Positions 156 to 64,000 of a DNA stretch of 64,000 bases are shown here, one piece after another. Origin of the DNA: Octopus sinensis (taxonomy: Eukaryota); assembly GCF_006345805.1 (NCBI RefSeq), contig NW_021833116.1, positions 1 through 64,000 on the forward strand. The letters are read 5' to 3'. The notes beneath the pieces were generated by a model. The model had not been told where the DNA came from, did no database searches, and was given only the letters and a program-made list of their open reading frames with translations. The position numbers were made by a program, and so were the translations under genes. The stretch's first letter is position 1. Each line of letters begins with the position of its first letter.

Positions 156-1185
156 ATGGAAAATTCAACAGAAGATTGCCTAAACAATTGTTTGGAGTCT
201 GACCAGTCAAACAAAACCTCAGACAGCCAGACTAACCTCAAAATCACATCATTCAACTACAAATCACCCCTCAGTCGGGAAGATAGGCAATTAATTAATA
301 TCACATTTTAGTACTCGACATATTCTTATAGACACACAAAACGACGGTTTATTTAATAAGATAATCTTTTAGACACAAATATGATACAAGTATGAGGGCA
401 TTAAGCATTTCTGTAGTCCCCAAAGCCCCTCTCCAGCTCAATATTCCGGGATTTTGACCCTCTCCACATTCCTACTCCAGAAAATGGCGATCCTTTTATA
501 GCTTCCAGCACAAACCTCAATTCGATAGAATTTCCCGCCATTTCTGACTTCCCGGAGCAGTCTCCTGAGGTGAATGTCCCTAAAAGGACTCTGGCAGACC
601 AGCTTTTAGCACTGTATAAATCAACGACCCTTGAAATTATGTGTTTGGAGTTTTTTTGCCAAAAAATAGACAAATATGAGTCGGAGGTTGCGAAATGGCG
701 AGAATCTGAGCTCAATTTGAAGAAAAACGTGGAATGTATGAAGAATGACTACACGGCACTGGAAGCCTCATTTCACAACCTCCACGACCGATTTGAGAAG
801 GCTCGTGGTCTCCTGGTAGAGTCTGAGCAAGTTTGGGAGAGGGGTCTATTCGATAGGCTCGGTCAGAACTGGAGTCGACGAATGGCTTGTTGAACAAAGA
901 AGTAGAAAAACTGACAGAAAAATATAATTTGTTGTTGGAGAAGGCGCAGAATAAGCTTGAGGAGTTAGGATGGGTGTATTATGGTTGTAGGGCTAATTCG
1001 GCTATTTGTGAAATGGGCAATCAACATAGCACTGATGTGGCTGCTGTCGAGGAAAATTATCGCAAGATTGAGATGAAGAATGCCTATTTGGTGAGTTGTC
1101 TCAATGCCAAGGTTTTCTGATTTTCAAATCTCAGGAAGCCGAGTTGGCCCAAATAAAGACAATTTTTAACCAATATATGACCTAA
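156..1185 (+). CDS. TACC: TACC-family coiled-coil protein; at least 6 micro-introns including one GC-AG
   Basis: C-terminal NDYTALEASFHNLHDRFEKARG...EKYNLLLEKAQNKLEE..AN resembles the TACC domain. An open frame runs from ATG 156 to TAA 1183-1185 via introns 287-311 (GC-AG), 347-372, 390-416, 831-856, ~965-991 and 1112-1134. Confidence 0.7.
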
Positions 1186-1544
1186 GTTCATTCTGTTTTA
1201 AATGCTTTTCTATAATTCGTTCATGTATCTTTAATGGAGAGTGGATAGCTTTTAAATACCCAAAGATTTAGTAAAGAGTCGCGGATTTGATAATGAAATT
1301 ACACAAAGAACAAAAAACTATATCAGAAGAGGGTTAGAACAAGTTTAATATTAGTAAAATTAAAAAATGTAATTATTCGGTGTCGATCATGAATTTATCA
1401 TTAATGTTAATTAATTATCATATTTAACGGCTGTTTAAAATGATTGAATATCTGAAATAAATTTTTCATTATGAATGATAAAAAGAGAATAATTATTAAT
1501 CTAACTAATTTTTTTGATTTTTGCTTTGATAAAATAGTTTGACT

Positions 1545-2140
1545 TGAATAAGACACAATTTCAATGGATAACTCTCAAATGCGTATTTAGTTGACTAAAA
1601 ACACAATTTCATTTCAGTATCTTGCTACTAATGGGAGAGTGGATAGTTTTTAAATGCCCATTCAGTTCACTTGAATGAGACAAAATTTGTCTATTTTGTT
1701 GACCAAAATGATACACAATTTCATTCAACTATCTTACTACTAATGGAAGAGGATAGCTCTCAATAAATGCCCATTTAGTTGACTAGAATAGCACACAAGT
1801 TGCCTATTTAGTTGACTTGAATGAGACACGATTTCATTTAAGTATTTTACTACTAATGGGAGAGGAGAGCTCTCAATAAATGCTTATATAGCTGACTTGA
1901 TTGAGACACAATTTTATTCAACTATCTTGCTTTTCTATAATTCGTTATTCGTTCATGTATCTTTAATGGAGAGTGGATAGCTCTCAATAAATGCCTATTC
2001 AGTTCACGTGAATGAGACAAAATTTTGTCTATTCAGTTCACTTCGGACTCTCCTTCCTACTCTCGATTAGTCACAACTAATGGGAGAGGATATCTCTTAT
2101 GCCTATTTAATTGACTAGAATGAGACACAATTTGTTTATT
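1545..2140. repeat. Degenerate tandem array, ~112-bp period, ~5 units plus a partial unit, with internal sub-repeats
   Basis: The motif ctaatgg(g)agag(t)ggatagct(ctcaat)aaatgcc recurs at ~1628, 1740, 1853, 1964 and 2078. A ~50-bp piece is also copied at 1203-1250. Confidence 0.85.
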
Positions 2141-2161
2141 TTGTTACCGAATATACAAAAA

Positions 2162-3802
2162 CTAATAAGGACGGTCATTGAACTCTCCCAGGTTGCTTTG
2201 ATGACTGTCATCTACAACATTATAAACAATCCAAACAATAATCCCCACGAAACTGGCCATAGTTCATTCCATCTATCATATAAACACAAATAAATACACG
2301 AAGGACCAGAAAAGCGAGAACCAGATGGCCGACTGTAAACAGGAACCGGCCTCCGAGGAACCTCGAGTGGCTCAGTCCCCTCCAAACCAGGTATTTTCCC
2401 CACATATTTACAATTTTGCATATCACTGAGAATAGTCAGCACATCTGACTCTCCTTCCTCCTCTCGATTAGTCCCTCCATTGGCCACAAACTCAAGCTGA
2501 GATTGATCCCCAGGCTGATAACGCGTCCAGAACTTAATAGAATGGTCATTCGACCCAGAAACAAGCAAATGGCCAAGAGGATGCCACGACAGTGACCACA
2601 CAGTACTGTCATGGGCGTCCTGCACCACCCCAATCTCCTTCTCAGTCCCCACCGACCAGTAGAAAATAGACCCATCATTCCCCCCACTCGCAAATACATC
2701 CCCATAAAGCGGATGCCACTCCAATACTACAACTCCCCCAATAAGGGTACCACTCACTTCCTTCTTGTGCCCCACAAATGACTGAATTGGCACACTCAGC
2801 TTCCTCGTATCAAATAATTTGATCGTCCTGTCCTCCGATCCCGACAGTAGTCGATTCCCGTCCACACTCCACCGGACATGAGTCACCCCTGCCTTATGCA
2901 CGTGACTAAACCCTCCTATATATATTTCTACAGTGTCCTCAGACTAGTCTCAGTCCGGGGGTCCCAAAACTTGATTGGACGTTGGGAATCCCTACTTCCG
3001 GAGACGAGGAGCCCCATTTGAGGGTGCCAATCCACGGAGGACACATCCGCTCCGTGTTCTACACTCCCCATACCACGGAATACCACGGAATATCCTCTCT
3101 TCTCGACAGGATATGAAATCCCAGACCCTCACTGTCCCATCGTTGGAGGAGGAGGCGAATTTGACGTCGTTGGGGGAGAAGGACAGTGATCTGACTGACT
3201 CCTTGTGGGCCTGGAACATTTTTACGTTGTTCATGTTGGGCTGCCAGTATTTAAGGAAGCCCAGACTGTCCCCCGAGACCAGCCAGTTGTCGTTGTGACT
3301 CCACGCCATTGCCTGAATTGCCTCATCGTGGGCCTACTGCTTTAAAATATCACCAACTTGCAAAATTGTCTCGAAATTGAAAACCAGGCCATTCCAGAGG
3401 GTGAATTCTCCACTGGCCGAGCCTGTGGTCAATCTCCGGCCATCGGGAGTCCACTAGTCATATTTAGCCCACTGACCATGACAGTGTAGATTGGACACCT
3501 CTTCTTGTTGGTGGCTTGTTTGACAAATCGAGTGCACGTGACTGAGACTGCACTGGATAGAGAAGGGCAGGGCTTTCTTGTCTGGTTGTTTTATTTGTTT
3601 TTATTACTTGGAAGGCGTATAATTCGTTTGGTTGAATGCACTGCTTTCTTCGGCCTGGGAATTTTGAGATGTGTCTGTTTTGTACATAGTAGAGGGCAGA
3701 GGAGTTATAGTCGATTGTTTTACGGTATAATGACTTTCTTAAACGTTTTCCGTCGAAGGTCAGTTTTACGTTTGGCCGGGAAATGGAATCTTCTGTTATC
3801 AT
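2162..3802 (-). CDS. WDR33: WDR33/Pfs2 mRNA 3'-end processing WD40 protein
   Basis: [53 protein letters not shown] and GHKKE..LEWHP motifs; ~8 GT-AG introns of 23-37 nt. Confidence 0.93.
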
Positions 3803-4018
3803 TTTTTTGTTGTACCACTACGATTAATAAAATTGTTTTATTTATTTTTAATATATTTTATTATTTGTTGTAATATAATATTTACTTTTTACTAATACTT
3901 ATAAAATTAAATTAACACTTTATTAAAATTTAAAATAAACAATTTTTCTTTATTTTAATGTAGTTATTTTTTACAATAAATAATATAAAGTTAAAAAATT
4001 TATATAAAAATTAAACAA

Positions 4019-5389
4019 CTAAAATAAAATAAATATATCAATATTCATCAGATGATTCTTGTGGTGCCATCTATTATAGTCACAAAACAAGCTCACTCGA
4101 ATACTACTGGGACGAGCCTGAGACCTGATATACAAACTATCAACATGTGATGACTGTCCCCACCCAGTCCCATCAATATCTCTGTGTCCTGCATGATACA
4201 CAGTCCCCGGAACAATCCTCCCAACTTCAACAAAGTCAACAGACTTGACTGACTTAACCATTCTCACAAGCTTGGAGGGAAAATTCCCGACTTGCAAAGT
4301 TCTGAGATTCTGCCCCCTCCACTCATAGTCATCCCTCCAATCAATCACAGCAATACAGTCACGTGCTGTCACCTTCAGCCCCCTCTCCCACCTGTCCTTT
4401 GCCTCAACCACTGGAATACACATCTACACTCAATATACCACTCATTACATCATTTAGTTGTAGAATTAATGATATAAATGAAGGTCTCTTCCTTGAGACC
4501 CAAATCCGCTTAAGGATGCCTTCTAAGGGGAAAGGACAGGTGTCGTTCTTAGGGAGTGTCTTCTCTTTGTGTGCCACCAACAATTCTTGGGGACTGAAGC
4601 CTTCCCAGGGGGGTGTTTTATGTGCAAATATTTCCCAAACAGTCACTCCAAATGACCACACGTCACCATCTTTGGTTATTCTAGAACATTCTAGAAGTTC
4701 TGGGGCTCGCCAGGCTGGGTTGTTGAGAGAGAAGTCACATGGGAGGTAATAATCGGTTATTTTGACCACATTTACTGGAGAAAGAAGGACTTGGCTGGCA
4801 GAGAGAGAGCCATGGATAATATTATTGATATGTAGAAAGGCCATTCCACTGGCTATTTGTCTTGAAAAGTGTAGGAGTCTGTTTATTGGGGGGAGAATAG
4901 GCTGATCATTCAGAAATTCTCTAAGGGTCCCCCCTTGGATAAATGTGGTGATTATGAGGAGTGGGGATTCGACTGTTAGGCCTATTAACTGGACTAAATT
5001 GGCATGTTCCAGACTAATGAACATATTTCTGTCCAGTTTTGAGGGTTTTGTGTCAATAGATTTGACTGCCACTCTCATTCCGGCCATAAATCCTTCATGG
5101 ACAGTCGTGCTCTGTCCACTGCCGATGAGGCGTGTGTATGTTATGTCCTCATGTGGCACACAAATGACGGAATCAGCAGATGTGGATTGGTTTATTGCTT
5201 TTATTAATATTCGTGCAGAATTCTTGTTTATTCCCACTGATTTGATGAGTTTAATACTCAGTTGAGAATGTCTATTGGTATAAGAGGGTGGGTGTACTCG
5301 GAGATTTTACTTTTGAGAGGATAGTAGTGGTGGAGGAGGCCTAATTTGGCCATTGTGTATTTTAGAGTAGATTTGTCAACTGATGACAT
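4019..5389 (-). CDS. ACK/TNK2-like protein (SAM-like, degenerate kinase, SH3, CRIB); probable pseudokinase
   Basis: Tyr-kinase-like fold (VAVK, W.APE, DVWSFGVTVWEIF) followed by an SH3 with WRGQNLRTLQVGNFP and a CRIB-like HAGHRD..GWG..VDSLY. The catalytic loop is HGSLSASQ and DFG is DYY. Confidence 0.75.
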
Positions 5390-6439
5390 CAAGGCACTGA
5401 TTAGATACCACAAAATAGTGTATTTTTTTCGGATTAAGTTTTATTTTATTCTAAATATTGAACAATTTTTTAATTTATTTTTATTTTTAAATAATTTGTT
5501 TTTTTGTGATTACACTTTGTAAATAAATTATAATTTATAACTCACGTGCTGGCTATTTTCATTAAGTCACAGGAAAAACCATTTTTTAATCTACAGTTGA
5601 AACTTTCTTAATTTTATTCTGAGAATATTTTTTAGTTTATAAAAAAAATATTTATGATGTTTATGAAAACCCAGAAAATTGATATTAGTATATTTTAATG
5701 GTTAATAGGGTGTTCTGTTATTATAGTTGTCGGGAATGGAAAAGTGACAAAGTCCTGGTCCTCTGCGGCATTTGTCCTTGTATGACATTCTGTGTTGTTG
5801 TACTTTCTATTTAAATTCAAAAAATAGCAAAACCTCATAAAATTCGTTCATTTCGGCCATTTTTTTGGGGGACGAATTTAAAAAGTCGAAATAATTTTTA
5901 GGGAAATTAGCTTTTCGAGTGTTTTGTCGTGCTTCCCAAACAAGGTTGGGTCTGTTTGTGAAATACGTGGGAATCGACCCTCCTTTAATACTCCCAGACT
6001 CCTCCACGCATTTGAGACGATTATAAATAAAATAATCCGCACTTATATTCCCAAATGTATCCCCAAAACGATACTTTGTTGTCGGCACGTGTCCTAGGTA
6101 GCTGCCATGGCTTAGTTAGTTCACATTTACCCCGGCATTTGACTTGGAATGCAGTAAGTGGATTTATAAGTCGTTTCAGCGTTCTTCTTTGCCTCGCACA
6201 TTATTTACTTATGTTTCCATGGGTATTCCGATTTATGAAAATAGTCCATTTTTATTAATTTGATAAAAATAAGCTTTTTTATTAAACAGGTTTGGAAAAA
6301 ATTGTGTGAAATATCACAAAACTGGAAAGCCTAAACTTTCAATATGGCCGGAATATTTTAACTTCTTGTCTCAAGGAACTGGAAACCTTCAAAAATAATG
6401 CACGAATGTGTCTGGCTGTTTAGAGAAAGAAAAGAAGCT

Positions 6440-7959: not shown

Positions 7960-8594
7960 TTAGACATTTTTATCACGATTTGATTGCCAAATAAAGATCC
8001 TGCTCATATTGACTTCCAGAATAGTCTTCTGGTCCTGAATATAGTTGAGCCGCTCATCCAACTTGGCAATCTGTCTGAGTGCTTCCTTATAGTTCTTGTC
8101 TAAAAATGCTTCTGCCTCATCCAACTCATATTCCATCATTATATTCGCCTGCATCCTTTATAACACATTTATACTCCCAGCAGTAAATACACACTCGATA
8201 CTGAGCTTATTCGAGCCTTCGAATAGACCTGACTACAAAGCAGATAACTGCACGTGAGATCCTCGTCTCCACTCAGCGTCTTTAGGTGTCTTACTGAGTC
8301 CAAGGAAGCCGTAAAGTCGGGGATTTGTTTCAGGTAACTTGATATTGAGAATCAATGATTTAAACCGAGATTTGCTTAGAGAAAAGTTTGATTCGATGTA
8401 TCTGAATTTCCTGTGTAGATCTTGGAATCGTTCGAGTGCTCCTTGTGCGTCCCCTTTATTGAGTTCCATGAAGGAATCTACGTCTTCCTGGAATAAATTT
8501 GGAAATTTATTTTTTATACCACAAATTCGGCTTTTATAAAATGATCAAAATTGTCTGGATTTTTGCTGATAGTTCCATTACCGTTTTCTGACAT
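7960..8594 (-). CDS. VBP1: Prefoldin subunit 3 (VBP1)
   Basis: AEFV/EDVDSFM, KFRYIE, ANIMMEYELDEAEAFL..N and DQKTILEVNMSRI motifs; micro-introns. Confidence 0.88.
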
Positions 8595-9293: not shown

Positions 9294-10223
9294 TTAAAAA
9301 AAAACTTTTCCAGAGTTATGTCGACGTTGTGGGTCATATCTTGATTGGTAAATTGAATAATCGGTTGTTTCTTGATTATTTTGTAAGGAATTTCGATAGT
9401 AGTCAAAACTGGATGCCAGCTGTATTCCGTTCTCAGGGTTGATTTGAGGAATAAAATTCGACATTTGCTGATATTGGACAAACGCGTTTGGATTGTGAGG
9501 GAATTGTCCGTTTTGGAAACTAGTTCCAAAGTTGGAATATGCTTGATAGTTAAATGGATTTTGTTGAGAGTACAAATCAGTCAATGGGGGTCTCGTAAAG
9601 TTGCCATTTTCAGGGAAATAATTTTCACTGATATTCATGCTATGACTGGATATAGGATGTGACACAACTTGATGTGTCATGTCCATAGGAATAAAATGAT
9701 GGTCCTTTTTTGCCAGATTTTTGTTTTTTCTACGTGGTCTGTATTTATAGTCCGGGTAGTCTCGCATGTGGATAGTTCGAAGTCTTCTGGACTCTTCGAC
9801 GAAAGGTTTTTTGTCTTCCTCGGATAACATCTTCCAATTATTTCCCAATCTTTTTGAAATTTCAGAATTATGCATTTTTGGATTTTCCGAAGACATTTTT
9901 TTACGTTGGACTCTCGACCAGACCATAAAAGAATTCATTGGTCTCTTGATTCTATTTTTTCCATTCGAAATTGGAGCACTTTCAACGTTCTGGTCTTGCT
10001 GGTAGTTAACAATCGAAGTTGATTGAGGATTGTTTTCAAATTTATCGGAGATTGAATTGTATTCCATTTGTGGAGCGGAGTACACTTTTTCCAAGTTATT
10101 AGAAACATTGAATTTGTAATGAGAATTATAATTTTCGTGGTATTTCTTTGATAATAAATTACCCGTTGAATCATTCTGATTGTATTCCAATTGTTGAATA
10201 GACATCAATTTATGCTGTTCCAT
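9294..10223 (-). CDS. SoxB: SoxB-type HMG-box transcription factor, intronless
   Basis: [37 protein letters not shown]...[11 protein letters not shown] in a 309-aa ORF. Confidence 0.93.
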
Positions 10224-12767
10224 TTACTCTATAAATTATTATGAAAATAATAAGACCAACAAAATCTCCACACTCAAACTTTGTTTGCGAAACAATGACC
10301 ATTTGTTCTCTTGAATAGTCGAAATAACGCGTTTATACGCCGCCCTGACGACGCGTATTTTATTTTTCAACAAAATATGTCTTTAAACATTCAACCGTAA
10401 AATTAAAGCTCATCCCCTTTTTTAAAATATCTCAACATCAAATATTCGGGGAATTTTTAATGTTTTTCTACACGTAAAATAATTTTTTGGGTTAAATTGG
10501 TTTTAAGTGCGGTATTGAAATATGCACTTGTGGGAACAAAAGGGAGCCATAAATATTGGATTTTAGGCAATAAATCACAGCTGAATAGAAAAACTCTTTG
10601 TTATTGAGGTTTTATTAATGGGATGACGGAAAGTGGAAACAATAGGCTGACCCAATTCAAAATCTGAATTACTTTCGTATCCAAGGCATTAAAGAATTGA
10701 AGTAAATATGCCAACAATGCAAGTATTAAGCCACAAATCGACATTCGCTTATTGACGATTAAAGATGGTAGATGATAGGAAACGCTATATAATTATTAGA
10801 AATATTGAACAAGGAATAGACTGAAGACAATATCATTTATCAATTGCTGGAACATCAATCAAACCGCTTTGATTTGTGCACGTGCAAATACCCATTTTAT
10901 ATCCTAAAAAATATTTATTTTACCAAAAATACATTCATTTTTGATTATATAAAAATTGAGTCAATCATATTATATCACAATAATATTAACTCATATGGTC
11001 TTAATTAAAACTTTTAATTCTTTCTTCAATAAGTAGATGTATTATATCTTTCTTTAAAAATGATTGGTCTTCCTCACTTTGAATTAAACTATTACTTTAT
11101 AGTAACTGGCAATGGAGTGTATTTTGTCGGGGAATTGTTTTTTATAGTTGAAACACAATGGACTTCCAATTAAAATTGGCCAATTGTAAAAATATAATAA
11201 GGTAATTCATTTATTTCTCAATAGACGTGAATATTGCTGTCATAAAATCATTTTATGAAAAACAATAATTACAAGAATAAGAGAATATTGGTTTTTCTAT
11301 TATTTTACGTACATTAATTACGAAATTTTCTTTTTGATTTCCCAAAAATAATTTGAGTCTCACTTTCAATATTTAAAATCATAAATTATATTTTTTCAGT
11401 TATTTTGCCTTTTTCAAACTAGTTTCAATTATCAGGATTATTTTCTAGATTATAAAATTTATGTCAATATCCAAAGCTTTCATCAATCATAATCCGATTT
11501 ATAAAAGTCGTCAACATAAACCAATAATGAATGAAAATGTAGAAAAACAAATTCCATTTAATAATTGTGGATTCTTATGTCATTATGACGATCAAGATTT
11601 TCTACCAAAGCCATCATATTGCACGTGGCATCTCTTTTGGAAGCCGATCTTATTTCTGATGTCATTTATAAAGTCAGAAGTTAGTAGTTGTCAAGTCCTG
11701 TTTTTGCCTTTACAGCAGATTACTTCTGAGTTTCCAATGGCAGGATAAATGACAAATGAGAAAACATGTCCGTGCACGTTGAATTTAACTTTTTACTGAA
11801 ATTTTGATTGTCGTTCGCATTTTCTTATTTTTAGGATAAAGAATTTGAAATTGACACGAAAGAGTTAAAATATAAAAACCAACCTCATTGTTGTAAAATT
11901 TAAGAATCCCATACTTTCCTGAAACATTTGTTTATTTAAAAATATCCCAAAAGATATGACTGATTTTACCATTGGTGTATACTGTTTGCGGTATCTAAAA
12001 TACATTGTTTGTGGTATCTAAAAATAGAAGTGATTGATCGCTGCATTTTTAGGGTTAGGGTCTCCTCGGTGTATCGGGAAAAGTTCTTTTAAAATACCCT
12101 GAAAAGATGTGGGATACATCCATATTTATGGTAAGGAATTTGTTACAAAATAAAAAAAGTTATCCAAATGTACAATTTGGTTAGCTGGCTTTTTCAGAAA
12201 ATATCGGTCACTGTGCTTTGCGGAAACTGCTACTCAATACGGCGGCACTAAGCTGACTTTTAGGCTCAGATGTATTAACAACACAAAAATATAAGACCAC
12301 CGGTGACATTAATTAGGGAAATGAATTATTCGATTGACTAAATTTTATTTATCAGCATATAACATGATCTAAAATTTCCGTTTCTAACTATCAGTGTCAT
12401 ATAGATGATCACATCTTCTAACAGTAAAATGAGGTGTTCGGATAGGACAGTAAAATGAGCAAAGTTGTTGAGTTCAAAAATCAAAAAAAAGACACTCCGA
12501 AGCAGTAGCAAAAGCTTTTTGTTTGAATTTCAATTGGTCATAAAAATATAAATGTCTTTTTAGAAGTATCTCACAGAACATAACATCCAACGTGATTTCC
12601 AACGTTTTATTTCTTATTTCCTTTTTCTTTTTATAGGCTAGTCCTTATGGTGGAAACCTTAAATGTCTATTTATTTAAAAAATGAAATTCTTTGATGTTA
12701 GAATATTAAACTAAATTATTTTTTGAATAATTAAATTTTTTAATTAATTTTATTATTCTATTTTGTG

Positions 12768-15150
12768 ATGGGGATCCTGTATCACCAAAAAATAGAAAGG
12801 CAAAAGACATTTCTGCTGACACTAATTCTGATCTCAATATGTGTCTTATCGTTCATAACAAGACTCCACTCCGTCATAAAATTCGAAAGCATAATCCACG
12901 AATTCGACCCCTGGTTTAACTATCGTGCCACAAAAATGATGGTCGAGAACTCATTTTATGACTTTATAAACTGGTTTGACGAGTCAGCCTGGTATCCCCT
13001 GGGAAGAGACGTCGGCGGAACAGTTTACCCAGGCATAATGAGCACATCCGGCCTCCTCCATTGGGCACTCCACTCCCTCAGCCTCCCAGTCCACATCCGT
13101 GAAGTCTGTGTATTCCTTCCTGCCTTCTACAGTGGTCTAATGGCCATCACAGCCTATTTATTTGCCTCAGAAGTGTGGAATAAATCAGCCGGGTTGATCT
13201 CCGCCTTCATAATGAGCATAAGTAGTCCCCTTCCACTCATTTCCAGTCCCCGGATATGTCTCCCGATCAGTTGCAGGGAGTTATGACTATGAATGTATTT
13301 CAATATTTATAATCATGTTTACTCTGTATCTGTGGGCCAGGACTGTCAAGTCTGGGAGTCTCCTTTGGGCAGTTTTTACTGCTTTTTTCTACTTATATGC
13401 AGTTGGTGGAGGTTTATTGACTTGTAGGTGGCTTCCTGGGGAGGATATATTTATGTAATCAACGTCATCCCTCTCCATGTATTCATACTTGTTATATCTG
13501 GTCGATATACTAGTAAATTGTTTTGTGGTTTGGTTTATACATGTTTTATTATCAGCTTATACTACTTTTTATATTCTTGGCCTACTTATGTCTATGCAGA
13601 TACCTTTTGTGGGATTCCTTCCGCTCACAACCAGCGAACATATGTCTTCTCTCAGTAATATTCGTATAATATGTCAGTGGTGTTTCTACTGCTCTGTTTG
13701 GTCGGACTTTTTAAGCATTTGGGGTCACTAAGTGACTCTCGTTGGGCAGCCAAGGTGGTTTTGTTGTGTTTGGGTGTGTTTGGCCTCGTTAGTGTGTTGA
13801 TGGTGGGCGTCCTTACTTATTTGGGTAGTCTTTTTGGGGGTTATTAGTGAAGGGGTTATTTCCCCTTGGACTGGCCGTCTTTATTCGTTGTTTGACACTT
13901 CCTATGCGGCCATCAACATTCCAATCATTTCTTCTGTCGCTGAACATCAGATTTCTATTTGGACGAGATATTTTATTGACTTGCATTTTATTCCGACTGT
14001 TTTTCCGATTGGAATTTGGCTGGCTTTTTCTCGTTTGAGTGATCAAATGATTCTGGTTCTCACTCTGGCTGTCACTTCTGCTTATTTTTCTGGGATGATG
14101 GTCAGACTGGTGATTATTCTGACCCCAATTTCCGCGATTGTGTCATCCTTTGCCTTGGAGTCCGTTTTCCGTAGAATTTCTCGATCCCACCGAACTGAGA
14201 AAAATTCATTTTTTTCATTCTCGATGGCCACAACTTCACTTTTTGCCGCGATTGCGTTATTTGTTGTGCACAGCACGTGGATTACTGCCGTGATGTATTC
14301 GGGGACTTCGATCGTGCTGGAAGGAAGCGGACAGGACGGGTACTGGTCAGTCAACTATTGGCAGAGCCCACCACATTATCGACGACTACAGAGAGGCCTA
14401 CTACTGGCTGGGAAGGAACACCCCAAAGGACTCCAAGATCATGTCCTGGTGGGATTACGGATACCAAATAACGGGGTTTTCTAACAGAACCACCATAGTG
14501 GATAATAATACGTGGAATAATACTCATATTGCCACTGTACTGTTCTCCTAATCAAATTAGGTGGGCAAAGCTATGGCCTCCAATGAGTCACGGGCTGCCG
14601 AAATAGCTCGGGAATTGGACGTGGATTATGTTCTGGTGGTGTTTGGGGGATATTTGGGGTATGACTCGGACGATATCGCCAAGTTTCTGTGGATGGTCCG
14701 AATATCCGAAGGGGAGTACCCTAACGAGATCCACGTGCCCAATTGCCCGATATTTTAGGAAAATGAGTATTTTGACTCGGAGGGGAACTATAACATTGGA
14801 AAGGGCGTTTCTGAGAGGATGAAGTCTTCTTTGATGTTCCGACTTTGTTACTACCGTTTTCATAACAAGCTGGTAGTATTATACATATATTAAAGACTAA
14901 TGGATATGACAAGTCGAGGAGACAGATGGTTGGGCATGTAGTCAATGAGTTGACTCACATGGAGGAGGCATTTACGAGCGAGAATTGGATTGTGAGGATA
15001 TATAAAGTTAAGGATCTGCCTTTTCGTGTCAGACTTACATATAAGCCGACATTTCCAATAAGTCTGCCAATGTCTAGAAAAGTAGATTTGTGTGGTTGTA
15101 ATGTGTAGAATTCGAGGACCACTAAGGGGTCCATTTATGGAAGAGGGTGA
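12768..15150 (+). CDS. STT3: Oligosaccharyltransferase catalytic subunit STT3 (STT3B-like)
   Basis: [33 protein letters not shown] and DNNTWN motifs; continuous frame after removing ~10 introns of 23-28 nt. Confidence 0.96.
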
Positions 15151-15799
15151 TTGTCTGGTTTTTTGACTTTATTTTTGGTTTAAACTAAAGTTTATTGGGA
15201 TAGTTTTATTGTTATGTTTGTGCTGGTGTTGGGGGTTTTGTAGTTGCTGATTTTTGAATTAGGTGGTCTGATTAGACACAAAATATATTTAAAATTGTAG
15301 TATCTTCTTGGGAGATTTCCTAACTGAATTTTCAACTACACTGAATTTAAAAAATATTTCAATTAGAGCTGTAATCTATTTTAGACTAAATTATCCAGGA
15401 ATAGTTTTCATTTAGAAAAGAATAACGACGTCAGCAAAACTACAATTTATTGATCTCTTATAATCAATGATTGCTGTATTCCTGATCAAGTTGCAACAAT
15501 CGCTTCAACTAAATTTAATATAGTGCAATTTAGATTTAAAAACGTTCAAGGTCATTAGAATGAATCAGCATTTCAACATCAACAATATGTTGATCTGTAG
15601 GAAGCATGTAATTAGCGTCTCTAACAATCGATTGCATAAAATTCGTAGCGGATTTATTATGTCCATTCACTTGGATATACCTTTCCTTGAGAACCAAATT
15701 TGCTGAGGAACATCAACAAATTATTATTTCCCACTCCAATAAAGTTCTCTCAAAAATGCACGTCTATTTTCTTGAATAAAATTGTCTATCTCTCCGCCT

Positions 15800-16570: not shown

Positions 16571-17053
16571 TTCAATTCAATTGTTTAATTTATAATGTTA
16601 ACTAAATTTTTTAATTTTTTTGCTCGTGAACTAACTAAGTGGACTGACTATTGCTAATTTATAAACAAAAAAATCAATTATAATCAAATAACGAATAAAT
16701 TTACCCTACAAATATAAACACATCAAATTAATGTACAGAAATTTCAAAAATGTTATCTCTACGGACTATCCTCCATCCTGAATAGCTTAAAATATACGTT
16801 CACGACTTTAGTTCAAAAATGCCTTTTATTTCTGACCATAACTCGTCTCAAACGCGATTAATTTAGCATTGTTCAAGGTCGACTTTAATTCCTTTCAAGA
16901 GGCATTTTAAAAAAGGTATTGAAGCACACAACATCCCAGATGAAAAGTCTGCCTCCATGGAAAGATATAGCCATTTAGAAATTATTTTTTTAATTCAATA
17001 AATATAGCGTCACTATAAATAACACATCAACTTTAATAACTGCTATGAAACTT

Positions 17054-17066
17054 ATTGGATACTCCT
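17054..17066 (+). repeat. Target-site duplication ATTGGATACTCCT, left copy
   Basis: Identical to 20691-20703. Confidence 0.92.
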
Positions 17067-46964: not shown

Positions 46965-48298
46965 TCAAATTTTTAAATTATTATTTTGATATCCCATTTT
47001 ATGCCATAAAATATTTTCGAGGACCGCAGTTTGAACTTTACTGCCACGCAAAGCCTTTTCTAAATTGCCAGAAGCCAATTTAATCCGGTTTAAGGGCACT
47101 GCCGGATTCAAAAAATACAAAAAATTACAGCTATCAGTCATTTGATTTCCCCTCTCCTCCATTTGTTGTTTTATAGTTCCAAGTTCAACATTAATCTACA
47201 TTCGTTCAAAAAATGAACTTTTTGTAGATCCTCCAAGCTAGACTGGACACGTGCTTCTGTTTGCCTGCATTTGTCAGTCACGTGGGCATGTTGGGCCTGT
47301 ACCTCTCGAAATTCGGCCATCATCCCACTCAGTTCGTCGTTTAAATATTTATCACGTGATTTGATAAGAGAAAGACTTTTGTCTATTTCTGTACGAATGT
47401 GACTCAATTTGGCTGTCAGGGCGGGAAATGCCAAGTCTATGGCGGCCTGTGAGTCCTTCATTTGGCTTAATCGTGATCTCCAGTCCTTGAATCTCCCCCA
47501 AAGTCAGTACCTTGTCATTTGTTGCCACAGTGATTCTCAAATGAGGCAAAACTCGATTTACTTCAAGTTCCCACTGAATTTTGTCAGTTTTAGAGCTCAA
47601 AATTGACTTGACTGGGTCCTCAATATTGTAGCTTAAAGTAGATAAGACGTTTAAATTCATTCCTTCATCTTCCTCCTCTAAATCAGTGCTTTGAGTGAGA
47701 TCCTCTTCGTTCTCGGTGACTTGTTCATCATTGGATTCCTCGAAATAAGTTGGTCTTGAAAGGTCAGTCACATCCGCAAACCTGTTCCACCGAAAGTTGG
47801 TGGTTTCAAGGGCCAATGAAGCCAGAAAGTTGAGCACGTGTGTACATTCAAGTCCCCATCCTGCTCTGAGGCGGTTTAGGGGGATTTCTTTATCAAATCC
47901 CTCAAAATGAAGTTATGCTTATACTAGTTGTTTTGAGAGCTCTAAAATAGTTTGGAGAAGAGTATTTGGGTCGTCAGACTAAAAAATGTATAAAAATACT
48001 ACTTCGTTAGGATAGCTGATGTTTTTTCCGCATTTATTGATTAGCCAGGCAGAAACTGAGACAAACATGAAAAATTGTTCTCCGCCGGGTTTTTGGGTGG
48101 CAAAATAATGTCTACGATATTTGCTTGGAGGTACCTCGTTATGGGCTGGTAGGAAAATTGGTTTTTGACAAGAAATTCTTTTTCATAGTCAAGGAGCTTG
48201 AGGATGTGGAAGATGTCGTCCATTAGGACAAACAGTTCGTATTCTATCTCATTTTTATTACTTTCCCTAATTTATAAATATAGCATTAAAATGTACAT
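46965..48298 (-). CDS. IFT57: Intraflagellar transport protein 57 (Hippi)
   Basis: EYELFVLMDDIFHILKLLDYEKEFL, WELEVNRVLPHL, EMEERGNQMTD..PLNRIK; start codon inferred to be split by intron 48267-48296. Confidence 0.85.
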
Positions 48299-56660: not shown

Positions 56661-57342
56661 TTAAAGAATTATTGTTCTTTATTGTAATCTCCACTTTTAA
56701 TAAAATTCGTGTACGAGATGTAATCAAACTCTCCATTTTCTCCCAACTGTATGTCCTTCAACATTTCTTTTAACTTTTAATAAAAAAAAATTAATCAACC
56801 TCTTTTTCCGAAAAGTTGTCCCCCATATTGGTCAGGATATCCTTTAGACTAGAAAATATTAAATAACTACGACTAGTCTTGATGAATTGTCCCATCTCCT
56901 TTTTTGTCAAACATTTTAAAAGAACTAATCAGTTTTTGTTCACTGTCAGTCCCTGAAAGTTGCCAATTCATTTTTACCAGACATTTTTTCCCCAAACATG
57001 CTAAGAAACGCCGTCAGATTTATCGGTCCCTTCACTTCATTCAACATTTCCTTGAGTCGTATTTCGTCCGGAGTGAGCCCTTATACATAAAATCAGAATT
57101 CACAACCTAATGACTCATAAGTAGTTTTCAAGTCTTCAAGATCAATTTTCCCGTCGTTGTTTTGATCAATGATGGCAAATCCCTGTAAAGGTCAAAGAAT
57201 GGACCACTTCTTTGAATTCTTGGATCTGTGCTTGAGTAAGTTTTCCAATTTTCCCCGGAGGTTTCAGGCTTGCCTTTTTTTCTGTTCTGGAAGGAGTATT
57301 TTTCTGGTTTATAGTCATTTTTTGACCTGCCTTATTACTCAT
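56661..57342 (-). CDS. Myosin regulatory light chain (EF-hand)
   Basis: QIQEFKEGFAIIDQNNDGKID.EDLK, GPINLTAFLSMFGEKMSGTD, LTNMGDNFSEKE, FDYISY; 5 micro-introns. Confidence 0.9.
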
Positions 57343-57776
57343 TCGTGGCTTTTCGATGTTGATTATTTCTCTTATTAATGATGAATTTGATTGCTATAGA
57401 TTTCCTGTATACTTTGAAACGTTAAGTGCTCTTATGACAGAAAACATATATTCAATTTATATCACGAGAATTGTATTATTTATAAAATTGAATTTCCTTC
57501 ATCACAGTTTTTAATTGTCGGCATATCCTGGGGTCTATCAACACATATAGAAAATAGCCGAATTTCGATTATTATAATGTTTGGATCTGAACCGGATCTC
57601 CAGCATGTACATTGGACTTGTAGAGTCTCTCTACTTTGGCTGGAGAGAGGCGATTAAAACTTGACAGTAAATCTCGATTTGATTTTAAAAATGTCTAATT
57701 TTCTGATTAAATAGAGTTAAGATAGAAAATTTTTTTAACTGTTTTAAAAAAAGTAAATCCGATCACGACATGATTT

Positions 57777-59274
57777 CTAAATAAATAAAAAATGCAACAA
57801 ACTTATGAATATGTATAATATTGCCACAATATTAGTGACAACATAAATAATGAAGAACAGTCGATCCAAAATCAAAGCGGAAAGCCTCCATTCAGAGAGA
57901 ATTGAGTTAATTCGGTCTTTCGATTCCTTCCTTCCAAAGAGTTCTCTCACGCACTCAGCAATTTGACGAACGTCAGCCTCCACACTGTTCGGCAAAATCC
58001 GTTGTCGAACATTTGGTTTATAAATTCTAATATTTTTGGGAATAGTTGTTATATTGTCATTTTCCGTGAGATTACGAAATCCAATAATTCGTCCAAGTTT
58101 AAAAATAACCTTCAAATAATCACAAAAATGAACTTTTTTAAGTTTAATCGGCAGAGGATTCACTTTTTCTCCCCTCATATTAAAAGTAACAACAATGGCA
58201 GCCAAAAATGTGGACAAGGTTATGAGGACCATGTTGAACACAAAATAACTCCCTACAATAAAATCTTCCCACACAACAAAAACCCAACAGCGGCACGGTC
58301 GAGGCAGCTCGCGGAATTGATTCGGAAAGTAGCAAAAGAAGAACAAAAAACGCAACATAAATATTCATTCCTAATCAGTAAAAAATATATAAAAAACCGA
58401 GTAACATTTTGGAAGGGGACTCGGCGGGAATCCAAAATATCGAAAGTGTGAGCATCGACAGAAGAATGCAAGGAACGGCCAAGATATAGTGATAAAACCC
58501 TCCCTTTCTGCTGAGAACCAAATAAAATGTTATATCAACGAATTTCTCAGAACAGCAAGGATAATTCTTGATGCTTTTTACAGCGTTAGACTCGAGAAGA
58601 TTCCACGTGTTGCTTTCCACATATTCTGTCAGTTCGAATGCTTCTTTATTATCATAGAAATCCATATCGACGTCCTCGCCTGTGTATGTCCAGGACCCAA
58701 ACTTGAGTTCGCATTTTTGAGTGTCAAATGGAAAGTAGAAAATATCGATGGGACACGAAGATAGGAGAATTGACTGAGGGATCCACAGGATTCTTCCATC
58801 TGCGTATATTGTAGCCAAGGCGTCTCGTTTGTCTTCTAATCTCATATCCGCACTATGTATCAATATATGTGTTGTATACTAATTATAAAGTACAATATCT
58901 GGTTTCCAGATGAGGTGAGAATATACGCGAATGACGGAGATGTTGTCGTATTCCGACGGGTTCCATTGGAGGAAATGGTCGTGCCATGACTAAAAATAAT
59001 AATTTTTGATATTTCGTAACAAATGTGAGCCACACGTTTGTTGTGAGGACTTGCTCTTTTTCGTTCAAATTGAGGATTTGGATTAAAGTAAGTCCAAAAT
59101 AAATCTTTAATGTGTCTAATGAGCTTTCAACTGGTCGATTCGATTTACCCGATTCGTGATAGCGTTTTAGAATTTGCTTAATCAGCAATTTTTCAGTTGA
59201 CAATACATTTACTACAAAATATAGTTTAATTAGGAACCATGTTGTAGTTGTGTTAGAAATAATATGAAAAACAT
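57777..59274 (-). CDS. Nicotinic acetylcholine receptor alpha-type subunit, anion-selective-type M2
   Basis: Signal peptide exon, WKPDIVLYN, Cys-loop [21 protein letters not shown], loop C YPCC, M1-M4; [27 protein letters not shown]. Confidence 0.92.
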
Positions 59275-59970
59275 TCCAAAATTTAATTTTAAAATTGTTA
59301 AAAATCTTTTTTCAAAATGAACAATCACACAAATAAACTTTCATGAAGCTCACCTTTATATACTTAACTAATTTAATTAGCAATTCGATAAAATCGATCG
59401 AAATGTTCTAATAGTGCCCCATTAATGGATTGGTTTTTTATCTAAAAACTTAAATTTATAACATAATTAGACTTTTTAAAATCACAACTTAAAACGAACA
59501 AATGGGGTCAAGAGAATATAATTGCAGAAGTCTCACATTTGGATCTGTTTTGACCCCAAAAGTGTCGAGGAACAAATTAAATATTCTACGAATTAACAAT
59601 ATTGTTTTCACTAAATAACTAATTTAAAATAAACTTGATTAATCAATTATTCACCTTTCAATATATAGAAAGGACAACTACATCAACTATTTTATTTCTA
59701 TCTCAACTAAATTTAAACTTAAATTTGACCTTATTTACTTCTTTCTAGCCTAATATTTCTGAACCCAGCCAAAATCTAAGCACTTTTTGATATCTCAGCT
59801 CTCTAACCACGCCAATATATTTCATTTCGTCAATTCCTGTGACTTAATCAGTAAACATGTTACGACAGAAAAAAATGACGATTTATTTCATTAAAACATT
59901 TTCTGAAATTAGGACAACCACCCAGGACTTTGTCTTTTATCAAAAATATATCAAAATTAAAAAAATAAAA

Positions 59971-60707
59971 TTAAAGAGAATTCAAATTATCCTCAAATCT
60001 AAATCCCAATAAGAAAAAAAATAAAACCGCTGAATCAAACTGAAATTTCTCGTCTGCTTTTCATTCGAAATACGACACAAATATGTAATATACTACAATC
60101 AACGACAAACATACATCACAGTCCACAAATACTCTCCCATCCTCACCCACAGGCACCTCCAAATTGGATGTACATCGAATTGCCTGAAAGGACATAAAAA
60201 ACCATCTTTCAACCAACAAAATTTTTTTAAATTTTTTGTCGATTGAAATTCCTGAATTTTTGAACCCGGAAAACAAGGCGATGGCCAACTTGGAAATTTA
60301 TGGTAAAAATACCAGTTTTTGTGCCTTTTCGACAGACCGACAGGCCACGTGCAAAATGGCAGGCTCAAATCTGACGGAAACACGTCCGACGGTCTCTTCC
60401 GTGTTTTTCAAGGCTTCGGTCTTTTTTGACTACACAAAATTAGACCAGGGCACGTGGGTCGCAAAAATCGTGTGTAACGTACAGCCATTTGCAGGATTGT
60501 TTATCGTTGGTTATGTTCTTTAAAAATATATTATTCTTATACGGTGATAGATAGGGAGACTCTGCCTGAGCATGAACTAGTGGTATAGTAGTCGTTGTGG
60601 TTGTTGATAAAAGTGATTATTTTAAGTAAACGATCATCAAATGATTTCTTTATGCTTAAATCTGGAGAATTTAAACACCGTTTTTTGTTAATTTCAAAAT
60701 TTTGCAT
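59971..60707 (-). CDS. TYW3: tRNA wybutosine-synthesizing protein 3 (methyltransferase)
   Basis: PDLSIKKSFD, YTTSSCSGR, WLYVTH, FEPAILHVACR, SGFKNSG, AIR...LEVP; ~6 micro-introns. Confidence 0.88.
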
Positions 60708-60794
60708 TTAGTGAGATGACCACGTGATTACAAAAATTTGAATTTTATTTAAAACTTTTATAATAAATTTGATAAACAAAAAAATGATTAAATG

Positions 60795-62627
60795 TCATAA
60801 ATTGCAATTATGATTTTCATTAGATGTATCAACTTTCTGAAAAATTTTTTTCCTTGACTTAAATCGCGAGCATATTTTGGCAAAAATTCTGTCATAAAAT
60901 TCTAACGAGCGAAGCCATTCTGGCAAAAATTTCCAATCCCTCAAAACCCTCGGCAAAACCCCGGGCTTTCTTTTTTGAAAAATGGACACAACCACGACAA
61001 AGACCAGCAAAATAAACATCGGCGACAAAACCCCGACAAACACCTTCCACCCACCCAACGACAATACAAAAATAAATCCAGGAAACATGAAAAAAACCAA
61101 GACAATGTAGACCAAGGGGAACCAACGGTACTTTTCCGTGATCGTCCCAAATCTGTGAGCAGCCATGAGCGGGACCTGAAAATCAAAAAGTGGACTACCC
61201 TCCGAAGCAGGGGGACAGGGTACCACACCAATATGCCATTCAAGTTGAAGTACAAATGACAAAAAGCAACCTGAAGAGCAGGAAATCGTGTTTTGGGGTC
61301 AATCGCCAACGCAGCGAGAATTGCAGTAAATGTGGTTCCCAGATTCGAACCCAGACACATTGGATAAAATCGCTCAATCGAAATAATATTCACTCCAACC
61401 AACGGAGTTAAAATAGACGTGAATGCTGAACTACTTTGCAACAGCATGGTGAAGACAACTCCAACTACGATGGCAAAATAGCCCGTCAAGTGTTTGAACA
61501 CCCCCGGAAAGTCAGAATTGATTATCTAAAAAATCTATCAAAAATACTTTTTTGACTCCAAAAACGAGTTTAGAATTGAGCAGAGAATACAAAAGTTTAA
61601 CAAGAAATACAAGACCCACTGCAATGCACACAAGTGACAGAACTAGGAGAATGGCCCCGATTTGAGAGTCAGTCAGAGTTGAGTAAGCAAAGAGAAAGCC
61701 ACCTGCTCACTAATAGGGATCTACAACGGAACACAACAGCTATATTTCTCTGTCTTGTTGTCAATCATTCTTTGACATTTTTTCTTTAAAATGCTCGTTT
61801 CGTTGGATTTACTGATTTTTTTCTTGTCGATTTGAACAATCAGATTTTCGAGACTTTTTGTGATTTTTGAAAAAAAGTCAACTTTGGAGACCTTCGTGCA
61901 GTTTTTGCAAACCAAAGGCACACACGATTTCCACGAAATGTACTCCAAATACCCAATACCAACAGTCGCAACTAAAAAAACTCACAAAACAAACAAAACT
62001 TAACAATTCCTCCAAAGTAAGAAATATTCCGACAGTCAGCAAATTAAAAATGTCGTGAATCACTGCCCCCGCGAACGCACGTGCAAAATCACCGCGGTTT
62101 TTGATGTTTCCGAAGGCGACGATGGTGTTGGTGAGGGACGTGCCAATGTTGGCCCCCATGATCACGGGAATGGCCACACTCACGGAAATTACTTAAACAC
62201 ATGAAAAATGACTACTTTTATTTCCCACCATCGTGACGATTATCGAGGACGAAGCAGACGAGCTTTGGACGACGATTGTGATAAGAATTCCAATCACAAG
62301 TCCCACGATTGGGTTTTTGAGCAAAGTTATTTTTTCTAGCGAACTTGAAGAGTTTCCTCCTCAAAAAATGTCAGACTCGAATTACCTCCGAGTAGTTTTA
62401 AGGATGTCCCCATTAGTTTGAGAGAAAATATGAACAAGTACAAGACTGAAAATATAACTACAGTCTTTAGAAATATCCGAATATATGCAAGGATCTTATT
62501 TTGGCTACCTTAGACATCAAAAACCATTTGAAGGACCTGATTTTTTTGAATTAGTGGCCAAGGGTGAATCCTCTGTGCCTAGAAAGATTTAATTTGGGAA
62601 AATACGTATCTGACAAGTCATGGACAT
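60795..62627 (-). CDS. SLC34A: SLC34/NaPi-II sodium-phosphate cotransporter
   Basis: Two QSSS repeats ([16 protein letters not shown]), [38 protein letters not shown]. Confidence 0.92.
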
Positions 62628-62849
62628 AAATTATATAAATTAGACCGATTTATTAATTTAAAATAAGACACGCTGAATTAAATTCCTAAGTATTTATTTG
62701 AGAATAATTTTATTTTTAATAGCATTTAATAAAGCAAATTTAATTTCTAGTTCCTAAAAACTAAATTCATAAAAAATTCATTTGACCTATTTAGATAAAA
62801 AGATTCCCAAACTCAGACTGTCCACTGTTTAAAAATGTAAAAAATTAAT

Positions 62850-64000
62850 TTAATGTTTCCATTGTATAGTGGACAAATCGACCCCATCCTGAACCATCTC
62901 CCAAAGAGGACTACACAATAAGACCCCCCGTACCTCATTTCCCTCAGTTTATTGACCTTCTCGACCACCAAATCGACAGTATACTCCACCTGTGCTAATG
63001 TAGTAAACCTGCCTATTCCAAACCTACCAAACACTCCCCACCAACTACCGAATCGACGAATGAGCCAACTCCTCAGACGTAGCCAAGGCTCTCAGGACAT
63101 AGGACGGCTCGAGAGTACTCGACGTGCAGGCACTGCCACTACACAACCACCACTCCTAACCTCCCAGAGGAGACCGAAACATTCTTTATGGCCATCAACA
63201 GACTCTCCCCTTCCACACAACTGAAAGATATGTTCACACACCCTGCAATACACCCACACAACACACCCGGATATGAACGATCGGGGTCTCCATTTCTCTC
63301 CAGTTTGTCCAATCGAGAAAACAGTCCATCAACCAACACATTTCTGAGCATACTGACGTGTTTGTAGTCATACTAGAATAGACAACACACACCACCTCCA
63401 TCTCCTCCCCCGCGACCTTGGCAGCCTCCCCCAGTCCGACCACCAGACTGACCGGCAATGTCCCACTACGGAAACCCCGTTCCTGTCCTCCTCCACTCAT
63501 TTGGGGGGTCAGTCGCACCCTTTGAGCCCTATTCACAAAAAGTGCCCCAATCCCTTCCATATATCAACACAATACCCTTAGGACCGTATATTTTGTGCCC
63601 ACTGATAGACAGAAGGTCAATCTTGTCCTTTCTGACATCAACAGGCACCTTCCCGACCGTCTGGGCTGCATCGCAGTGAAAGAACACTTTATTCCGTCGA
63701 CACAACTCCCCTGCCAATGACAACCAACCCAAACCAATGTCCCCGATAGGCTGAACTACTCCTATTTCATTATGTACCCCCATTATCGACACCAAACACG
63801 TGTCGGGGGTGATCTCCGACTCCAATAACTACAATTCTCTACTTTCCGTGGAATACCTTCAGGTCGACGATCCCCTTCGTGTTGACGGGGAGGTAGGTGA
63901 CCCTGAAACCCTCACTTTCCAGAATCCTGCAGCAATCGAGGACACATTTGTGTTCCTGGGTTGTTTAGTTTTGTTTTTTACGATTTGTGATGTGATTATG
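62850..64000 (-). CDS. NFS1: Cysteine desulfurase NFS1, 5'-truncated by the window edge
   Basis: [65 protein letters not shown]. Confidence 0.95.

Follow-up and report, generated by a model that had tools for sequence, protein, structure and literature searches.

How can a gene carry one strand bias at its start and the opposite bias at its end? The question is raised by the first 64 kb (hereafter the window) of contig VCDQ01011375.1 (214,620 bp) from the Octopus sinensis assembly GCA_006345805.1, in which the sense strand of most housekeeping-type genes begins rich in A and C and finishes rich in G and T. An earlier note on this sequence had described the flip, ascribed it to mutation bias and placed its source in the AT-rich spacers between genes. 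Quantified here, the flip and its mutation-type character stand, while the spacers lose the role that they had been given: the pattern belongs to each gene and is tentatively read as a footprint of transcription.

The window has 36.5% G+C, many retroelements of the long interspersed nuclear element (LINE) type and introns of 20-33 nucleotides (nt); such introns and a G+C content of about 36% are also found in at least nine other contigs of the same assembly. Among animals, introns of this class are known only in dicyemids and myxozoans (PMC13644364). The Dicyema japonicum genome has 36.7% G+C and 49% repeats, and a stranded RNA-seq library was made for the 67.5 Mb dicyemid genome (PMC6736024). 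By its sequence, the window DNA looks like that of a dicyemid parasite of the sequenced octopus, not of the octopus itself, and this assignment is accepted in what follows.

The gradient within genes

The bias was followed as K3, the third-position keto skew (G+T-A-C)/N, its change along a gene being the value of the last third minus that of the first. The main test set consists of the 17 complete cellular genes of the window, taken without selection. In 15 of them the sense strand passes from A+C-rich to G+T-rich at third codon positions (Wilcoxon p = 8e-5), and K3 of the pooled set runs through -0.20, -0.10, +0.05, +0.16 and +0.25 in successive fifths. The mean change amounts to +0.416, against 0.00 +/- 0.036 when third positions are shuffled within genes (z = 11.5). 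Nine genes show an individually significant change (p < 0.01), and none a significant one in the opposite direction. Position-3 GC skew by fifths is -0.29, -0.15, -0.07, +0.22 and +0.26, and position-3 TA skew goes from -0.13 to +0.21 along the genes. Quarter by quarter, the sense GC skew of most cellular genes starts at about -0.2 to -0.3 and reaches +0.2 to +0.5. The reversal of K3 between the first and the last fifth rules out a sense strand that is G+T-rich, with one sign, along the whole transcript.

The gene models behind these figures come from a dynamic program that maximises open reading frame (ORF) length across GT..AG introns of 20-33 nt, with strand and identity checked against Pfam and, for SoxB, by exact-protein look-up. 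Pfam confirmed TACC, WDR33, the ACK-like kinase, VBP1, STT3, LIPE, CANT1, THG1L, Dok (IRS PTB domain), IFT57, TYW3, SLC34, the Egr-like gene and the retroelements, so that every identification of the earlier note that was tested proved correct. A splice-aware gene finder trained on codon usage found few genes, probably because codon usage changes along them, and was replaced by ORF maximisation plus Pfam. The models are approximate: some in-frame mini-introns are probably kept, some intron boundaries are wrong, and starts and the limits of untranslated regions (UTRs) are undefined. WDR33 and other genes contain in-frame GT..AG segments of 24-27 nt that resemble unremoved mini-introns, such as the stretch giving 'GTLIGGVVV' within a WD repeat of WDR33; mini-introns that lack a stop codon are invisible to ORF-based models.

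The strongest flip is that of the apyrase gene CANT1 on the + strand (34901..35940; Pfam Apyrase, E = 2.5e-96), in which K3 climbs from -0.35 to +0.58 (p = 1e-11). The WDR33-like WD40 gene on the - strand (2110..3817; Pfam WD40) is also among the strongest, with third-position GC skew going from -0.27 to +0.62 (p = 2e-13) and K3 from -0.33 to +0.55, and the ACK-like tyrosine kinase gene next to it (4022..5440, - strand; Pfam PK_Tyr_Ser-Thr) flips strongly as well (K3 -0.29 to +0.43, p = 9e-10). The gradient is found in four further + strand genes: the TACC-like gene, whose 5' part may reach upstream (417..1117; Pfam TACC_C; third-position GC skew +0.04 to +0.41, K3 p = 0.003), STT3 (12744..15185; Pfam STT3; GC skew -0.19 to +0.31, p = 8e-7, K3 p = 3e-7), THG1L (37296..38176; Pfam Thg1; GC skew -0.42 to +0.18, p = 1e-4) and, to a moderate extent, the hormone-sensitive lipase gene LIPE (21845..23806; Pfam HSL_N and Abhydrolase_3; GC skew -0.27 to +0.16, p = 0.002). 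The - strand contributes VBP1, a prefoldin subunit (7963..8544; Pfam Prefoldin; K3 -0.36 to +0.21, p = 0.003), IFT57, where the flip is stronger at the 5' end (46968..48271; Pfam IFT57; GC skew -0.42 to +0.11, p = 2e-4), TYW3 (59974..60707; Pfam TYW3; GC skew -0.50 to +0.27, p = 3e-4) and the Na/Pi cotransporter gene SLC34 (60798..62588; Pfam Na_Pi_cotrans; K3 p = 6e-4). The earlier assertion that the flip disregards gene orientation is thus borne out, and so is the list of flipping genes for the most part. Dok (r = +0.07, p = 0.03) and PIN4 (42131-42674, - strand; p = 0.09) are only marginal, and of the NFS1-like gene (62816..64000, - strand) only the G+T-rich part is visible, its 5' part lying beyond the window end. 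Two genes absent from that list follow the pattern moderately or weakly, namely a Cys-loop receptor gene (57710..59407, - strand; Pfam Neur_chan_LBD; K3 p = 0.003) and an EF-hand gene (56672..57393, - strand; Pfam EF-hand; K3 -0.25 to +0.13, p = 0.045).

The genes that had been named as exceptions behave as such. The single-exon SoxB gene (9294..10223, - strand; HMG box) has a K3 change of -0.06 and an all-site r of -0.01, and the Egr-like gene is flat too. Both retroelement ORFs are flat controls: the intact LINE reverse-transcriptase ORF (17049..20636, + strand; RVT_1) has an all-site r of -0.001 and an even third-position GC skew, and the second one, RT2 (44137..46928, + strand), is uniformly T-rich at silent sites. 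A long coiled-coil gene with about 27 mini-introns (28951..33264, - strand) is nearly flat, with a K3 change of +0.18 and no trend in fourfold GC skew, and UBE2V (about 38290-38800, + strand) is mixed to flat.

In 200-nt bins of the + strand the genes form a sawtooth that is visible without any gene model. The skew rises from -0.30 to +0.29 across WDR33, drops from positive to negative within the spacer of about 200 nt and 10% G+C at 3818..4021, and rises again from -0.19 to +0.25 across ACK; CANT1, THG1L and TYW3 have the same shape in this model-free profile. Each gene has a 5'-to-3' gradient of its own, which is reverse-complement symmetric, and from this the symmetry seen on the + strand results. 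An artefact of ORF extension into stop-poor, C-rich DNA was considered and rejected, given the model-free profile and the presence of the gradient inside Pfam-aligned domains.

The length scale is of little help in identifying the cause. Models that are linear in relative position, exponential (600-800 nt) or ramp-shaped (800-1000 nt) fit about equally, and a fixed scale of 0.6-1 kb is indistinguishable here from scaling with gene length, so the scale does not discriminate between causes.

The gradient was also sought in seven other contigs of the assembly (about 167 kb), fetched via homologues of the window's LINE protein. Genes were predicted as in the window, retroelement-like ORFs were removed by similarity, and names were given by eye from translations together with precomputed Pfam hits; the 20 cellular genes obtained bring the total sample to 37. 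A positive K3 change is found in 14 of the 20, and the mean is +0.12 (permutation z = 3.6, Wilcoxon p = 0.03). The change is clear in the genes named as an SR splicing factor, a MYST acetyltransferase, PFKFB, a condensin-like gene and TSR3. Those named as an Ets factor, nuclear receptor, LRR-PDZ protein, IFT88, MGAT2 and C-type lectin show no gradient. The effect therefore recurs in the genome, and the window is an unusually strong region. Across the 37 genes the two gene ends co-vary in skew (rho = -0.33, p = 0.05), and skew amplitude is weakly correlated with third-position G+C content (GC3; rho = 0.34, p = 0.04). The flip occurs in housekeeping-type genes, and none is seen in the transcription factors (SoxB, Egr-like, Ets, nuclear receptor) or in the retroelement ORFs; as a sign of restriction to germline-expressed genes, this contrast is only suggestive.

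Silent sites, introns and proteins

The gradient is largest at fourfold degenerate sites, where GC skew moves from -0.33 to about +0.2 and TA skew from -0.12 to +0.17; codon positions 1 and 2 show it too, in smaller measure. The base content of fourfold sites is A 0.35, C 0.26, G 0.13 and T 0.26 in the first fifth of the genes and A 0.24, C 0.16, G 0.26 and T 0.34 in the last, which makes the two gene ends reverse complements of each other in fourfold composition. In always-synonymous NNY codons T/(C+T) increases from 0.54 to 0.73 (p = 8e-24), and in NNR codons A/(A+G) falls from 0.77 to 0.46 (p = 1e-37). The purine fraction at fourfold sites does not change along genes (p = 0.24), nor does third-position G+C. 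The shift thus consists of transitions only (A<->G, C<->T), and the unselected window genes agree. An amino-to-keto shift of this kind looks like a deamination-type signature, with C read as T and A read as G, that switches strand in mid-gene. Judged by composition, over-deamination looks to have affected the sense strand toward the 3' end and its antisense counterpart toward the 5' end; base composition may suggest such a mechanism but does not prove one.

As to sequence context, CpG is not depleted, its observed/expected ratio of 0.88 equalling that of GpC, and decay of methylated CpG is therefore not the driver. No preference for the TC (APOBEC-like) context was found, and a following G has a modest effect at both gene ends.

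Introns had been said to follow the gradient, which holds for GC skew: in 90 introns of strongly skewed genes it is -0.18 in the first third of the gene and +0.17 to +0.21 later (Fisher p = 0.009; permutation by intron p = 0.05), and it correlates with the skew of the flanking exons (rho = 0.31, p = 0.003). The five introns quoted as examples are found at 35340, 13222, 831, 38017 and 62911 (- strand), in the stated parts of CANT1, STT3, TACC, THG1L and NFS1, respectively. Beyond the stop codon, the first 200 nt still have a keto skew K of +0.10.

The bias is strong enough to alter proteins. In the last third of the genes Trp is enriched 1.9x, Val 1.5x and Gly 1.4x, with Arg within the range of 1.4-1.9x, and Thr (0.65x) and Ser are reduced (0.65-0.7x for the pair); the contrast between amino acids with G/T-rich and A/C-rich codons at the two gene ends is significant (Fisher p = 1e-5). 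Along the CANT1 domain, the index of G/T-codon minus A/C-codon amino acids rises from 0.02 to 0.22, whereas in 30 animal orthologues it stays at 0.07 throughout. Amino-acid composition is therefore not the cause, and the gradient is derived.

Taken together, the maximum at fourfold sites, the GC skew of introns, the skew past the stop codon, the restriction to transitions and the derived state relative to orthologues support a mutation-type bias over codon selection, as the earlier note had argued. That note had also named what would count against the flip, the lack of a sign change at fourfold sites or introns and an explanation by amino-acid composition alone; the sign change is present at both kinds of site, and the flat orthologues of CANT1 exclude the latter.

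No mention of a skew of this kind was found in the dicyemid genome papers searched, nor elsewhere in the literature searched. The flip in GC skew as such is already known from fungi; new here are the coupled A/T flip and the reverse-complement symmetry. So strong a sign-reversing silent-site bias within 1-2 kb was previously on record only for fungal genes, in their G/C content, and the animal case is cleaner, being a pure deamination-type shift that swaps strands in mid-gene and reshapes proteins. Such a strand swap narrows the causes to processes that expose opposite strands at the two gene ends. The gradients also have practical consequences. They violate the stationarity assumed in codon-usage, dN/dS and phylogenetic models, in a group notorious for long branches. 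They also shift the amino-acid make-up along proteins and impair gene finders that have been trained on one codon table.

Transcription and its rivals

Whether the asymmetry is centred on spacers or bound to genes can be read from the non-genic DNA. The flanks of 18 strongly skewed genes were examined in successive 200-nt bins, with other coding sequences and retroelement ORFs masked. On the 5' side K is -0.009, -0.010, -0.035 and -0.018 (standard error about 0.02), and on the 3' side +0.10 followed by +0.018, -0.016 and -0.030. No mirror-image lobe is thus seen in these flanks, K remaining within +/-0.035 at 200-800 nt on both sides, and none was found in the degenerate retroelement fragments that border ACK and IFT57 at their 5' ends and VBP1 at its 3' end; to the left of the VBP1 3' end the skew keeps the sign that it has in the gene. 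Skew reaches its maximum 100-400 nt into the coding sequence and is about zero in the 200 nt before it. At their 3' ends, genes in convergent pairs (TACC/WDR33; CANT1 facing the RF-1 gene), where a downstream promoter is lacking, are as G+T-rich as genes in tandem pairs. Since non-genic DNA shows no mirror-image skew, the pattern belongs to each gene, and the earlier proposal that every spacer acts as a symmetric source of asymmetry is not supported.

The closest precedent comes from fungi. In most unicellular species McLean and Tirosh (2011) found opposite GC skew at the two gene ends, attributed to transcription with the cause unsettled: the coding strand leans to C at the 5' end and to G at the 3' end, with intermediate values between, and the skew also shows at fourfold sites and in amino-acid usage and reaches into the 3' UTR (PMC3315797). 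Trp is about twofold enriched near 3' ends in both systems. In fungi, however, AT skew does not vary along genes, and C-to-T deamination was argued against by the authors, whereas in the dicyemid T/A and G/C flip jointly, only transitions are involved and the ends are reverse complements. The fungal negative skew is strongest in the promoter and 5' UTR, and fourfold and non-degenerate sites are alike there; in the dicyemid, an animal with introns of 20-33 nt, the 200 nt upstream of the coding sequence are unskewed and fourfold sites are affected most. The sense strand is G+T-rich in mammals, and start sites have a bias towards C in both fungi and invertebrates (summarised in PMC3315797). The dicyemid bias shares with transcription-associated asymmetry its tie to the transcription unit, seemingly of genes likely to be active in the germline, and its 3' half has the mammalian sign, but the sign reverses within the gene and the amplitude reaches about +/-0.5 at silent sites. 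Transcription asymmetry in mammalian introns amounts to a few per cent, far below the dicyemid amplitude.

The explanation that we tentatively favour is a mutational footprint of the deamination type, tied to the transcription units of genes with probable germline expression. The sense strand is G-poor and A-rich at the 5' end and C-poor and T-rich at the 3' end, with purine and G+C content about constant. Such a pattern would be expected if excess deamination affected the first 0.5-1 kb on the antisense (template) strand and the last 0.5-1 kb on the sense strand. The effect ends at the gene edges. The strand left unpaired or unrepaired during transcription would differ between the two ends of a gene. 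In the version preferred here a single rule would act twice, the non-template strand being damaged most toward the 3' end of its transcript, with sense transcripts starting from the 5' spacer and putative antisense transcripts from the 3' spacer. The very AT-rich spacers would start and stop transcription in both directions and so confine both classes of transcript. One rule applied twice would yield the symmetry, the confinement to genes, the independence of neighbours and a small net sense excess of G+T in mid-gene. Alternatively, and on the fungal model, RNA polymerase II complexes may impose different regimes of mutation and repair at initiation and at termination. The unusual strength of the effect might reflect weak repair of deaminated bases in a reduced genome.

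A footprint of transcription is supported by the maximum at silent sites, the exclusive use of transitions, the skewed introns and 3' flank, the flat non-genic flanks and, by analogy, the fungal precedent, as well as by the neighbour-independent G+T-richness of 3' ends, the co-variation and the reverse-complement composition of the two ends and the preference for housekeeping-type genes. Several points weigh on the other side. The link with germline transcription is drawn from gene function, and the gene models are approximate. The mammalian type of asymmetry fits the 3' half only, the 5' half needing either antisense transcription or a second regime, and the near-equal amplitudes of the two ends would need antisense transcription to be about as influential as sense transcription. 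Introns follow the gradient in GC skew but not in TA skew, being T-rich throughout. The effect is much weaker on the seven other contigs (+0.12 as against +0.416 in the window). Lastly, half of the genome is repeats, and with their turnover non-genic DNA may be too young for its composition to have equilibrated and for a mirror skew to have built up, which would weaken the chief argument against models centred on spacers.

This last point leaves room for recurrent germline double-strand breaks, for instance at stable meiotic hotspots in the nucleosome-poor spacers on either side of active genes, with 5' resection and deamination of the exposed 3' tails. It is what remains of a proposal of the earlier note once programmed fragmentation is taken out, and it is a possible, though doubtful, source of the flip. 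The affected strand would differ on the two sides of a break, and the polarity is right: left of a break it is the forward strand that is single-stranded, and right of it the reverse strand (PMC7615360). At human break hotspots the flanks carry C>N and A>N mutations on the single-stranded tail (Hinch et al. 2023, PMC7615360), so that polarity, affected bases (C and A) and scale (about 1-2 kb per side) match the dicyemid pattern as read from composition. Breaks would also explain the reverse-complement symmetry, the joint C-to-T and A-to-G signature, the scale of 0.6-1 kb and the independence of neighbours, and the somewhat higher GC3 of strongly skewed genes is what biased gene conversion at hotspots would give. 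The human pattern, however, is one of mutations at short-lived hotspots, symmetric in any DNA, whereas the dicyemid skew is standing and confined to genes. Mirror lobes are missing from the non-genic flanks and degenerate retroelement fragments beside strongly skewed ends, the sign to the left of the VBP1 3' end is opposite to prediction, gene-adjacent flanks are less skewed than fourfold sites within the gene, and the spacers themselves are extremely AT-rich.

More generally, the AT-rich spacers that bound active genes at both ends might be fixed sites of single-stranded DNA in the germline, through break hotspots with resection or, less likely, through dense origins; this is similarly doubtful, if anything slightly more so. 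The missing mirror skew would then result from rapid turnover of non-genic DNA. If it were true, base composition would provide a map of recombination initiation (or replication) at the resolution of single genes in an animal that cannot be cultured, a gene-sized sawtooth written by deamination of exposed strands.

Polarity by itself does not decide among origins, resection and bidirectional transcription. Bidirectional transcription from every spacer, with a non-template strand that is A+C-rich near starts, had been proposed as well and appears improbable. It agrees with the coding-strand C-bias at start sites in fungi and invertebrates (PMC3315797), and a start in the 3' spacer firing antisense would mirror the bias at the 3' end. 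Its sign is nevertheless wrong under the mammalian rule and opposite to the known logic of deamination on the non-template strand, outward transcripts should skew the non-genic side, where the flanks are unskewed, and the peak lies 100-400 nt inside the coding sequence, with almost nothing in the 200 nt upstream.

Selection that acts on transcripts or on transcription, in place of mutation bias, is a shade less probable still. Introns and 3' UTR belong to the primary transcript, which makes selection at the RNA level compatible with their skew, and the mRNA ends of strongly skewed genes, compared over 200 nt at each end of the coding sequence, are complementary in composition (5' A+C-rich, 3' G+U-rich). 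Duplexes predicted to form between these two stretches are about 2x as stable as 5'-vs-5' controls, but exceed mononucleotide shuffles only weakly (mean z about -1; THG1L and TYW3 about -2.5), a complementarity without clear sequence specificity. Moreover, the effect is strongest at the least constrained sites, amino-acid sequences have been dragged against the orthologue pattern, and hundreds of silent sites per gene would have to be selected in an organism in which selection is likely to be weak.

Replicons of gene size, with an origin of replication in nearly every spacer and forks that meet in mid-gene, were a further suggestion and are very unlikely. The sawtooth does resemble replication skews in being abrupt at fixed sites and gradual between them, like the upward jumps at human origins, and its polarity fits the A+C-rich leading strand of yeasts (PMC3459929). 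Under the human and bacterial rule of a G+T-rich leading strand, however, the sign is wrong. Replication skews in yeasts are weak, far below the +/-0.3-0.5 of the window. The period is about 2 kb here as compared with tens to hundreds of kb, highly efficient origins at such a spacing are implausible, intergenic DNA is unskewed on both sides of the putative origins, and neighbouring non-housekeeping genes are skipped.

Programmed somatic fragmentation, finally, was rejected as a cause, since somatic events would not be inherited and could not shape a consensus sequence; the window bears no sequence sign of the excision of gene-sized units or of circles that had been envisaged. Prescott and Dizick are said to have described, in 2000, base-composition anomalies at both ends of the gene-sized macronuclear chromosomes of hypotrich ciliates. 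That strand bias is reportedly likewise mirror-symmetric about a gene-sized unit, but it lies in the short non-coding leaders and trailers of separate molecules, whereas the dicyemid bias runs through coding sequences on a contig of 214,620 bases.

Spacers, neighbouring features and the source DNA

The spacers at 3818-4021 and 42601-42800 have 6-10% G+C and consist of nearly nothing but A/T runs, with a terminator and a promoter falling within about 200 nt; that between TYW3 and SLC34 is just about 90 nt long (60708-60797). In the convergent spacer between TACC and WDR33, positions 1580-1911 hold a tandem repeat of 113 bp (3 copies, 78% matches), with weaker copies up to about 2133. The RF-1-domain gene (36869-37340, - strand), another gene absent from the earlier list, is divergent from THG1L, and the modelled 5' ends of the two overlap by about 45 nt; either their promoter region is very short or shared, or the models reach slightly too far.

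Three near-identical copies of about 20 kb exist in all: window positions 87-20220 recur on two further contigs with 99.84-100% identity, one of which has a more diverged, indel-rich stretch over 15.3-18.0 kb of the window, upstream of the LINE. The copies are probably haplotigs or stem from several individuals in the sample. Inside skewed genes they differ at fewer than 25 sites, too few for polarising mutations. For a comparison across species no dicyemid orthologue of CANT1 was found, its best match in the protein collection searched (48% identical) coming from other animals.

Public annotation of the window consists of just a few chimeric "octopus" genes. Chimeric calls on the dicyemid-like contigs, the window included, combine for example RVT_1 with Abhydrolase_3, the LINE ORF being joined to LIPE, or Ets with RVT_1. 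Products of dicyemid-like contigs are listed in NCBI, UniRef and nr as 'uncharacterized protein LOC... [Octopus sinensis]'.

The RT2 family (44137-46928, with related fragments at 38870-41557) has a fourfold TA skew of +0.6 to +0.7 and more C than G along the whole ORF. The LINE at 17049-20636 is without this bias of T over A and C over G, and the bias of RT2 may reflect a compositional history specific to its family. Between 24300 and 25500, the keto skew of the + strand rises from -0.22 to +0.21, a gene-sized tooth of the sawtooth in which no convincing gene model or domain was found and which may mark a small unrecognised gene.

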